DNA of 64,000 nucleotides from Paragordius varius (GCA_964247055.1 OZ176056.1:8370001-8434000); one strand, 5' to 3'. Positions 26,201-27,385 are shown, counted from the first letter of the stretch. The notes: generated from the sequence alone by a model not told the origin. Numbers and translations are program-made.

Positions 26201-27385
26201 TAAAGCTATGGTGAAATTTAAGATTTTGCACCGGACTTAAAAAGTTTTATATAGTAAATTTAATACAGTTTTAAAAAATTATATTATACATATATAGGGG
26301 ATGGTGTTTTTAGTTTTGGGACTTACGAGGGAGCATCTAAGAAAGCTAATTAGTATAATTTTGGAATAAATTAATTTATTGATTTTATGTGTAAAATAAA
26401 TTAATTTTTTTCCAAAAAAATATAACTCATACTTTATGATCTGCTAAACAAAATAATTTTCCTATTAGAGTTCCTTTTCCTGGAGCATTAAAATGGTTTT
26501 TAGGTTCCTCAGAATTTGGTGATAAAATATGACTATCATCATGATCAATCAAAAGGAAGGCACAAATAGCAATGACAAAATATAAAATGCCACGAATCTA
26601 TAATGGGAATAAAATTATTTTTTAAAGGTTCTTTTTATAATATGTTAAAAATCATTTTAAGATTCCACAATACTTATTTAAACCATTTAATTTTTACTAT
26701 ATAAGCTGACATGATTGGAAAAATACTATTTAAACTACCCAGCATATTTTGCTATTAAAAAATTAAGGTAAATAATATTCCAAACTGTAAATTTTTAAAA
26801 AAATATTTGTTTTAATATATCGCTTAAATTTAATCCAATTAAATATGTGTTTTACATAAATATTCTTTTTATATATATTATTGTACTTTAATCGGTGAGT
26901 TTTTGTGTTTTTTGAAGGCTGGATCATATATCAAAGATAAAATTGCAAGGTATATGAAATCACTCGTTTCAAATATAAATATAGTTCTGTATAAAATTAG
27001 ATTATCTTTTACCTTAGGGGTCCACTAAGTAAAAGGCCGTAAAGAAATATTACAAGGAGCAAAAATTGAATAATCCCAAGGACAGTTATTCTAAGGATGG
27101 GTAATTTTTGAAAACTAATTTTATTATCACCAGATATAATGCTTTGTGCCAAATAAGAAAATATAAATATGCTTGGAATTTAAAATCAAATAGTTGAACC
27201 TTAAACACAATACGGTTATTTGGGTCGAAAACCCTAAAATATTTGGTGAGATAAGGGAAGAATATAGAAAATATATGCCCATGCATTTAAATGCCTTAAT
27301 AGCGATCCCAAATACAAAATAATTGTTTGGACGCCTAAAAATTACATTTATACATAAACTTTGGTTCAGGTATATCATAATCCAT
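17268..27385 (-). CDS. SLC30A5: Zinc transporter ZnT5 (CDF family), 18 exons, about 885 aa
   Basis: Exons (minus strand, high-low): 27385-27360, 27334-27200, 27171-27013, 26986-26887, 26597-26433, 26018-25830, 24925-24736, 24555-24483, 24343-24261, 24141-24043, 23718-23600, 22919-22762, 21176-21047, 20648-20525, 20151-19822, 18669-18443, 18052-17909, 17474-17268. Total 2658 nt with consistent phases. The translation follows human ZnT5 as I recall it over its whole length: [143 protein letters not shown]. The H/D Zn-site motifs (HMAFD, HVLAD) are intact. The ZnT5-specific N-terminal membrane domain is present, which distinguishes it from ZnT7. The start codon is either 27385 (needs the 25-nt intron) or the in-frame ATG at 27378. 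Confidence 0.95.
19505..19745. mobile_element. MITE family B (degenerate)
   Basis: TTCAAATTCACCCTAAAATAAATTATGTG ... CACATAATTTATTTTTAGGG. Confidence 0.55.
20654..20979. mobile_element. MITE family A (ZnT5 intron 13)
   Basis: Both TIRs present; fills about 325 of the 398 nt of the intron. Confidence 0.7.
21177..22761 (-). other. GC-AG intron (ZnT5 intron 12)
   Basis: The conserved FTFG|YGRVE needs a phase-2 junction TTTGG|GCACGT...TATAG|ATATGGG. The nearest GT, 4 nt downstream, would frameshift. Confidence 0.8.
21250..22775. repeat. Degenerate tandem array filling ZnT5 intron 12
   Basis: Recurrent TTTTCTAACAAACATAATCAAAATTAGG units; some units include copies of the exon-12 end and donor. 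Confidence 0.8.
23035..23334. mobile_element. MITE family B
   Basis: CCATTTACAATTCAAATTCACCC ... GGGTGAATTTGAACTGTAAATGGTATA. Confidence 0.7.
25505..25810. mobile_element. MITE family A (ZnT5 intron 6)
   Basis: Both TIRs, including the AAAAGACAACCATACTTTTT core. Confidence 0.7.
26987..27012 (-). other. 26-nt GT-AG micro-intron (ZnT5 intron 3)
   Basis: Sequence GTAAAAGATAATCTAATTTTATACAG, which contains a CTAAT branch-like motif. Read-through gives an immediate TAA; removal restores the conserved GPLR|TIFIFE. Confidence 0.9.
27172..27199 (-). other. 28-nt GT-AG micro-intron (ZnT5 intron 2)
   Basis: Sequence GTTCAACTATTTGATTTTAAATTCCAAG. Removal is needed to shift from the homologous frame ...TVLCL into the homologous frame SIFIF...LLLSGPLR; read-through hits TGA at 27127. 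Confidence 0.85.
27335..27359 (-). other. 25-nt GT-AG micro-intron (ZnT5 intron 1)
   Basis: Sequence GTTTATGTATAAATGTAATTTTTAG. Removing it joins the well-placed start (caaaATGg) MDYDIPEPK in frame to RPNNYF. It is optional if the ATG at 27378 is used instead. Confidence 0.6.

Follow-up and report, generated by a model that had tools for sequence, protein, structure and literature searches.

Within 400 bases of its start, the reading frame that opens at ATG 27385 on the minus strand of the DNA studied here is interrupted three times, by segments of less than 30 nt. The question that this locus raises is what these segments are, whether introns, scars of damage, errors of assembly or DNA destined for elimination, and, if introns, how they came to be so short and how they might be spliced. 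Below we present evidence, drawn from comparison of the sequence with orthologous genes, that the three segments are very probably U2-type GT-AG spliceosomal introns, ancient in origin and since compressed, that make up introns 1-3 of an intact ZnT5 gene. All coordinates are counted along the window, by which we mean the entire 64,000-nt stretch that was analysed (OZ176056.1:8370001-8434000), with ZnT5 lying on its minus strand.

The gene was identified by its homology: a conserved downstream exon, compared with 1.8 billion representative proteins, retrieved ZnT5-type cation-efflux proteins, and tblastn searches of full-length ZnT5-type proteins against the window delineated a minus-strand gene running from 27.1 to 17.3 kb. 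In the gene model derived from these matches (Table 1) all junctions were refined, with those at 24743/24344 and 20524/20152, which fall in poorly conserved loops, being uncertain. From first to last its introns measure 25, 28, 26, 289, 414, 904, ~400, 119, 324, 680, 1585, 398, ~373, 1152, 390 and 434 nt. Aligned with P0047, the ZnT5 of Xenopus, the predicted product shows 42% identity (722 columns), and it retains both of the HxxxD zinc-site motifs that characterize transmembrane helices II and V (HMAFD and HVLAD). Exons 10, 11 and 14 match the Pfam family PF01545, the cation-efflux (CDF) domain, and alignments with two vertebrate ZnT5 proteins (P0047 and P0024) reveal the N-terminal multi-helix extension specific to ZnT5, with its GPLRT..FE.SD and ADHK motifs. 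Judged by these features, the gene is an intact SLC30A5/ZnT5 orthologue.

Certain other aspects of the gene are worth recording. The histidine-rich cytosolic loop (19822-20151, minus strand) is greatly expanded: its ~110 residues, many of them H, N or K, largely explain why the protein is longer than its frog counterpart. The junction of exons 10 and 11 spans an intron (21177-22761, minus strand) of the GC-AG type (TTTGG/GCACGT...TATATAG), this being the sole choice consistent with homology; a GT donor at 22737 was rejected, as it would add eight residues found in no orthologue. A protein search with exon 3 for a hairworm orthologue gave no match, and the best match to exon 10 (74% identity) came from a 1.8-kb contig of an invertebrate with 36% GC, which stops short of the 5' end of the gene.

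Table 1. The predicted ZnT5 gene and the layout of its 5' end, with the introns of Xenopus slc30a5 that occupy the aligned positions
Feature	Coordinates	Strand	Length (nt)	Phase	Boundaries, codons and remarks	Xenopus slc30a5 intron
ZnT5/SLC30A5 coding region (predicted)	17268..27385	-			17 exons, 16 introns, 858 aa, no internal stop	
Coding exon 1	27360..27385	-			ATG 27385; MDYDIPEP plus 2 nt of codon K9	
Putative micro-intron 1	27335..27359	-	25	2	GTTTAT...TTTTAG; splits K9	Intron 1, R24, phase 2, 2484 nt
Exon 2	27200..27334	-	135			
Putative micro-intron 2	27172..27199	-	28	2	AAG/GTTCAA...TTCCAAG; splits S54	Intron 2, G65, phase 2, 1000 nt
Exon 3	27013..27171	-	159			
Putative micro-intron 3	26987..27012	-	26	2	AAG/GTAAAA...ATACAG; splits R107 of GPL-R-T	Intron 4, R116 in GPL-R-T, phase 2, 1823 nt
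Exon 4	26887..26986	-	100			
First ordinary intron	26598..26886	-	289	0	Sole frame-compatible GT-AG pair; donor 26886	

All three segments begin with GT and end with AG, and their lengths are not multiples of three. If the first were kept, the frame from ATG 27385 would stop after 16 codons; keeping the second shifts the frame, and keeping the third yields AGG TAA, i.e. a stop immediately past the donor, just as the first-pass annotation had read it. When the three are excised a single open frame runs from ATG 27385 through ...LLLSGPLR/TIFIFETSD... up to the donor at 26886, and its alignment with the vertebrate ZnT5 proteins (P0047 and P0024) is colinear over all three joints. In tblastn searches with the same two proteins the match stops at 27012 and resumes at 26988, at the same query residue. 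The first-pass annotation had placed breaks of 28 nt (27199-27172) and 26 nt (27012-26987) in the ZnT5 homology, each bounded exactly by GT..AG, and had held that their excision restores conserved sequence (...SGPLR/TIFIFETSD); we reproduced these coordinates, lengths and boundaries, and the single open frame with its colinear homology agrees with the restoration. Other splice variants were considered and discarded: a 37-nt version of micro-intron 2 (donor 27208) would remove three residues and employs a poorer donor, and 20-nt and 29-nt variants at the breaks lose conserved residues.

Breaks of this kind might instead be the marks of damage, with the gene being either a pseudogene in decay or the victim of insertion errors in the assembly. 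The boundaries speak against this reading: among random inserts of 25-28 nt drawn from the intron DNA of the gene itself 0.3% appear to be bounded by GT..AG, which gives a chance of about 3e-8 for three such inserts. So does the remaining 858-aa frame, which is intact with its catalytic motifs kept. Assembly errors, moreover, are typically of 1-2 nt rather than of 25-28 nt. Of the 31-letter words sampled from 26700-27600, four DNA-like runs from two samples contain 0.76-0.92, with 0.88-0.92 being reached by runs from both samples. Some 19% of the 31-letter words of this interval overlap one of the three segments, and from the share of 0.92 we infer that not all three can be missing in those reads. 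RNA runs carrying the same species label contained a fraction of 0.00 of the words sampled from 26700-27600 and from 22700-27400, and exact look-ups of two ORFs from the window recovered no independent DNA contig on record.

The intron positions of orthologous genes bear directly on the choice between damage and splicing. We mapped P0047 exactly onto its gene in the record CM004466.1 of GCA_001663975.1, which we take to be Xenopus laevis, and compared the split codons and phases with those of the window gene. Each of the three segments has a Xenopus counterpart (Table 1): the pairings of S54 with G65 and of R107 with R116 are unambiguous in the alignment, and K9 pairs with R24 if a one-residue gap follows K9, being otherwise one codon off. 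This correspondence continues downstream, where the 289-nt intron agrees in position and phase with Xenopus intron 5, and for 11 of the 15 Xenopus introns overall the window gene has an intron at the corresponding residues of the alignment, with the phase being equal in all 11. A second, non-vertebrate orthologue (P0056; locus L003 on NIVC01000829.1, 45% GC) shares the first two of the positions, both with introns of phase 2, an 85-nt first intron and a 571-nt second one at C52, which aligns with S54; the third micro-intron position is absent from this gene. By our own estimate, which considers five introns among ~435 nucleotide positions, three positional coincidences would arise by chance with a probability of ~5e-6. 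The sharing of position and phase with orthologue introns thus points to ancient introns that have shrunk, rather than to lesions or misassembly. Given this positional match and the chance figures for the GT-AG boundaries, damage, pseudogenization or assembly error is very unlikely as the origin of the three breaks. The first-pass annotation had spoken of three consecutive spliceosomal GT-AG micro-introns beside long introns, and frame, homology and the position and phase of orthologue introns all argue for such a reading.

The same comparison bears on a further possibility, namely that the segments are removed from DNA by an IES-like programmed elimination in somatic cells, with no splicing being involved. 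Their lengths of 25-28 nt are comparable to those of the shortest ciliate IESs. However, they are bounded by GT..AG and not by TA..TA, and they occupy the positions and phases of spliceosomal introns in orthologues; nor is intragenic elimination of this type known to us from animals. We therefore regard excision at the DNA level as exceedingly improbable.

Among the three predicted introns, micro-intron 1 is the least certain, because a second ATG, at 27378, opens the frame of exon 2 and reads through the 25-nt segment. This would allow for two micro-introns only, with translation starting at ATG 27378 and the 25-nt segment being either coding sequence or part of the 5' leader. In line with such a start, the ORF at 27127-27378 is open from ATG 27378 via the segment into exon 2, exon 1 comprises just 8.7 residues, so that homology is thin there, and an exact match with the orthologous intron calls for a suitably placed one-residue gap. 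Against it, ATG 27385 precedes ATG 27378 and has the better context, with A at -3 and G at +4, and in unspliced form would lead only into the 16-codon dead end. Moreover, the YDIP of exon 1 matches the xVDxP motif that directly precedes the first intron of other ZnT5 proteins, and both Xenopus and L003 possess a phase-2 intron at this point. On balance, a start at ATG 27378 seems unlikely to us. The claim in the first-pass annotation that a 25-nt segment links the best-context ATG to the gene holds for the GT-AG boundaries and the frame, with the qualification that ATG 27378 offers a start that dispenses with the segment.

Having considered the existence of the micro-introns, we turn to the signals by which they might be spliced. 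Their donors read AA/GTTTAT, AG/GTTCAA and AG/GTAAAA and their acceptors TTTTTAG, TTCCAAG and ATACAG (n=3). The 13 long ZnT5 introns show little conservation beyond GTW...YAG, and the donors and acceptors of the micro-introns are alike in kind. Branch-like motifs, GTAAT, TTAAAT (or TTGAT) and CTAAT, are situated 7-14 nt from the 3' ends, with the CTAAT of micro-intron 3 lying 10 nt before its end; all of these were read by eye, and such motifs are common in DNA of 20% GC. Neither the U12-type /RTATCCTT 5' motif nor the TCCTTAAC branch site occurs in any of the three micro-introns, and an Rfam scan of the window detected no RNA family and hence no snRNA gene. We propose that ancient bilaterian introns, which are 1-2.5 kb long in Xenopus, would have been compressed to near the spliceosomal minimum, with the downstream ZnT5 introns having probably stayed ordinary or grown by tandem repeats. 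Removal of the micro-introns from RNA may then be a matter of ordinary U2-type splicing operating at its lower size limit, in which they would probably be recognised by intron definition through the GT, the AG and a branch adenosine in a TAAT-like motif that precedes the 3' end by 7-10 nt.

A related reading accepts the micro-introns as real and assigns them to a dedicated short-intron pathway, distinct from that used by long introns and dependent on special factors or on cap-proximal recognition. The gap in size between 25-28 nt and at least 119 nt, and the restriction of micro-introns to positions 1-3, could be taken in its favor, as could a subset of human short introns that are dependent on SPF45 rather than U2AF (10.1101/784868). 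However, no feature of the sequence calls for a separate mechanism, the splice-site motifs at either end do not set the micro-introns apart from the long ones, and the analysis of myxozoan and Dicyema introns favors canonical U2-dependent splicing (PMC13644364). A separate pathway appears doubtful, and ordinary U2-type splicing is the reading that we retain.

The intron sizes had been characterized in the first-pass annotation as bimodal, and in ZnT5 they are indeed discontinuous: the three tiny introns are introns 1-3 of 16, the remaining 13 range from 119 to 1585 nt, and the interval of 29-118 nt is empty. Its value of 90 nt for the next shortest intron was not recovered in ZnT5, where the shortest after the micro-introns is the 119-nt intron (24260-24142). 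Similarly, the introns of up to ~2.9 kb that it described are not those of ZnT5, the longest of which is 1585 nt, although introns of approximately 2-3 kb do exist in the neighboring SUV3 gene. The window is AT-rich (~20-35% GC), and most of the 1585-nt intron is taken up by a diverged tandem array (21400-22700) whose units measure ~146 nt. One copy in this array (22171-22254) shows 76% identity to the 3'-terminal 12 nt of exon 10 together with the donor region, and reads GA/GTAC at the exon edge as opposed to GG/GCAC at the real site. This suggests that the size gap reflects the inflation of downstream introns by repeats, with the 5'-proximal introns having been kept minimal.

Beyond ZnT5, no micro-introns were found in the other genes of the window (SUV3, a GNAT acetyltransferase and UGDH), and those introns of UGDH and SUV3 that lie within it measure hundreds of bases to kilobases. 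Likewise, when the whole window was scanned blindly for segments of the form GT(18-40 nt)AG that would connect two open frames, 121 candidates emerged, almost all of which are overlapping-frame noise, with none credible outside ZnT5. At its 5' end the UDP-glucose dehydrogenase gene (58283-63480, plus strand) has kilobase-scale introns only, the first being ~1.1 kb (58484-59624), and 5' micro-introns are therefore not universal among the genes here. A more sweeping generalization would have this ecdysozoan run two splicing regimes per transcript, one of ancient-derived 21-32-nt introns in the first few hundred bases, handled by cap- or promoter-proximal intron definition, and the other of repeat-inflated introns downstream. 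We see this as improbable; if it were true genome-wide, many hairworm gene models would be truncated at their 5' ends by standard annotation.

The surroundings of the gene offer some additional observations. SUV3, which codes for a mitochondrial helicase, is arranged head to head with ZnT5, and the putative starts, ATG 27385 (minus strand) and the first ATG of the SUV3 frame at 27476 (plus strand), are ~90 nt apart. With so little space between them, the two genes must share a very short promoter, have overlapping leaders or form their 5' ends in another way. A protein search with SUV3 exon 1 gave best matches of 51-62% identity, which came from a spider, a slug and a rotifer, with no flatworm among the named hits. 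Two islands richer in GC (33-35%), at 36000-38100 inside a SUV3 intron and at 12500-13550, contain overlapping ORFs on both strands and look like decayed mobile elements; those of their ORFs that were tried against Pfam matched no family.

What is new here is that the positions and phases of the micro-introns match those of orthologue introns, with micro-intron 1 agreeing to within one codon. Extreme intron shortness is encountered in this instance in a repeat-rich genome, with kilobase introns alongside, and at the 5' end of the gene only. The occurrence of both tiny and kilobase introns in such a genome would mean that extreme shortness is possible without whole-genome compaction, and the presence of both extremes on one pre-mRNA that a single spliceosome must handle both. 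Ancient introns that have shrunk would also lend themselves well to the study of what prevents introns from becoming still shorter. There is a practical side to this as well: the minimum intron length of standard annotation is often >30 nt, and under the usual settings gene finders and aligners would miss micro-introns or call them frameshifts, to the detriment of gene models at their 5' ends.

In the literature we found no report that couples nematomorphs with short introns, and introns are absent from the main text of two hairworm genome preprints; the ZnT5 case is best viewed against short introns in other lineages. The micro-introns of the ciliates Paramecium and Nyctotherus are ~25 nt long and resemble those of ZnT5 in this length, in their GT-AG boundaries and in the frameshift or stop that results from their retention (PMC5014332). 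All introns of these ciliates are tiny and their genes compact, as against a tiny minority beside long introns in an animal. Ultra-short introns of <66 nt have been described in humans (PMC4463651), including an SPF45-dependent intron of 56 nt (10.1101/784868), and these share with the ZnT5 introns the condition of being short amid a genome dominated by long ones, with special factors being possible. They differ in being about twice as long and rare, and the available parts of these two sources state no positional rule comparable to the confinement of the ZnT5 micro-introns to the 5' end (PMC4463651, 10.1101/784868).

Animal introns of <30 nt have been reported only for myxobolids and Dicyema, and with 25, 28 and 26 nt the ZnT5 segments fall within the length range of this ultra-short class (PMC13644364). 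Tiny introns are the rule in these compact genomes, with a median of 22-27 nt, and the canonical U2-dependent machinery has been argued to be sufficient for them (PMC13644364). The likeness of the ZnT5 introns to those of Myxobolidae and Dicyema japonicum extends from the length and the GT-AG boundaries to the conserved positions and conserved flanking exons and the parasitic habit of the lineages, with weak motifs beyond GT and AG and A residues shortly before the AG as further possible resemblances (PMC13644364). The reduced GTa...AG motif of Myxobolidae and Dicyema is compatible with the GTTTAT, GTTCAA and GTAAAA of the ZnT5 donors and the TAG, AAG and CAG of the acceptors, with n=3 only; the TAAT-like motifs fit the A residues near the AG of myxozoan and Dicyema introns, a fit that is not significant in such AT-rich DNA. 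In contrast to those genomes, where tiny introns are the norm and have short neighbors, ZnT5 has three tiny introns out of 16, all of them 5', in one gene. Its other introns reach from 119 to 1585 nt and consist in part of repeats, and the read assemblies total 150-280 Mb. The lineage, too, is an animal one other than Myxobolidae and Dicyema, and probably Nematomorpha; the GC content of the window and the 150-280 Mb totals are in keeping with the 26.9% GC and 200-300 Mb published for hairworms.

A closer parallel in gene architecture comes from the neodermatan flatworms, i.e. Gyrodactylus salaris and tapeworms, in which a discrete short mode likewise exists beside introns of many kb (PMC4040987). 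In G. salaris a short mode of ~32 nt dominates intron positions 1 and 2 (PMC4040987), a 5' polarity that is echoed by the ZnT5 micro-introns being introns 1-3 of 16, in this one gene only. The G. salaris introns, at ~32 nt, remain above 30 nt as opposed to the 25-28 nt of ZnT5, and the phyla differ; homology of the trait is not implied. Within the literature searched, Gyrodactylus salaris comes closest to the combination of short introns at the first positions with long introns elsewhere (PMC4040987).
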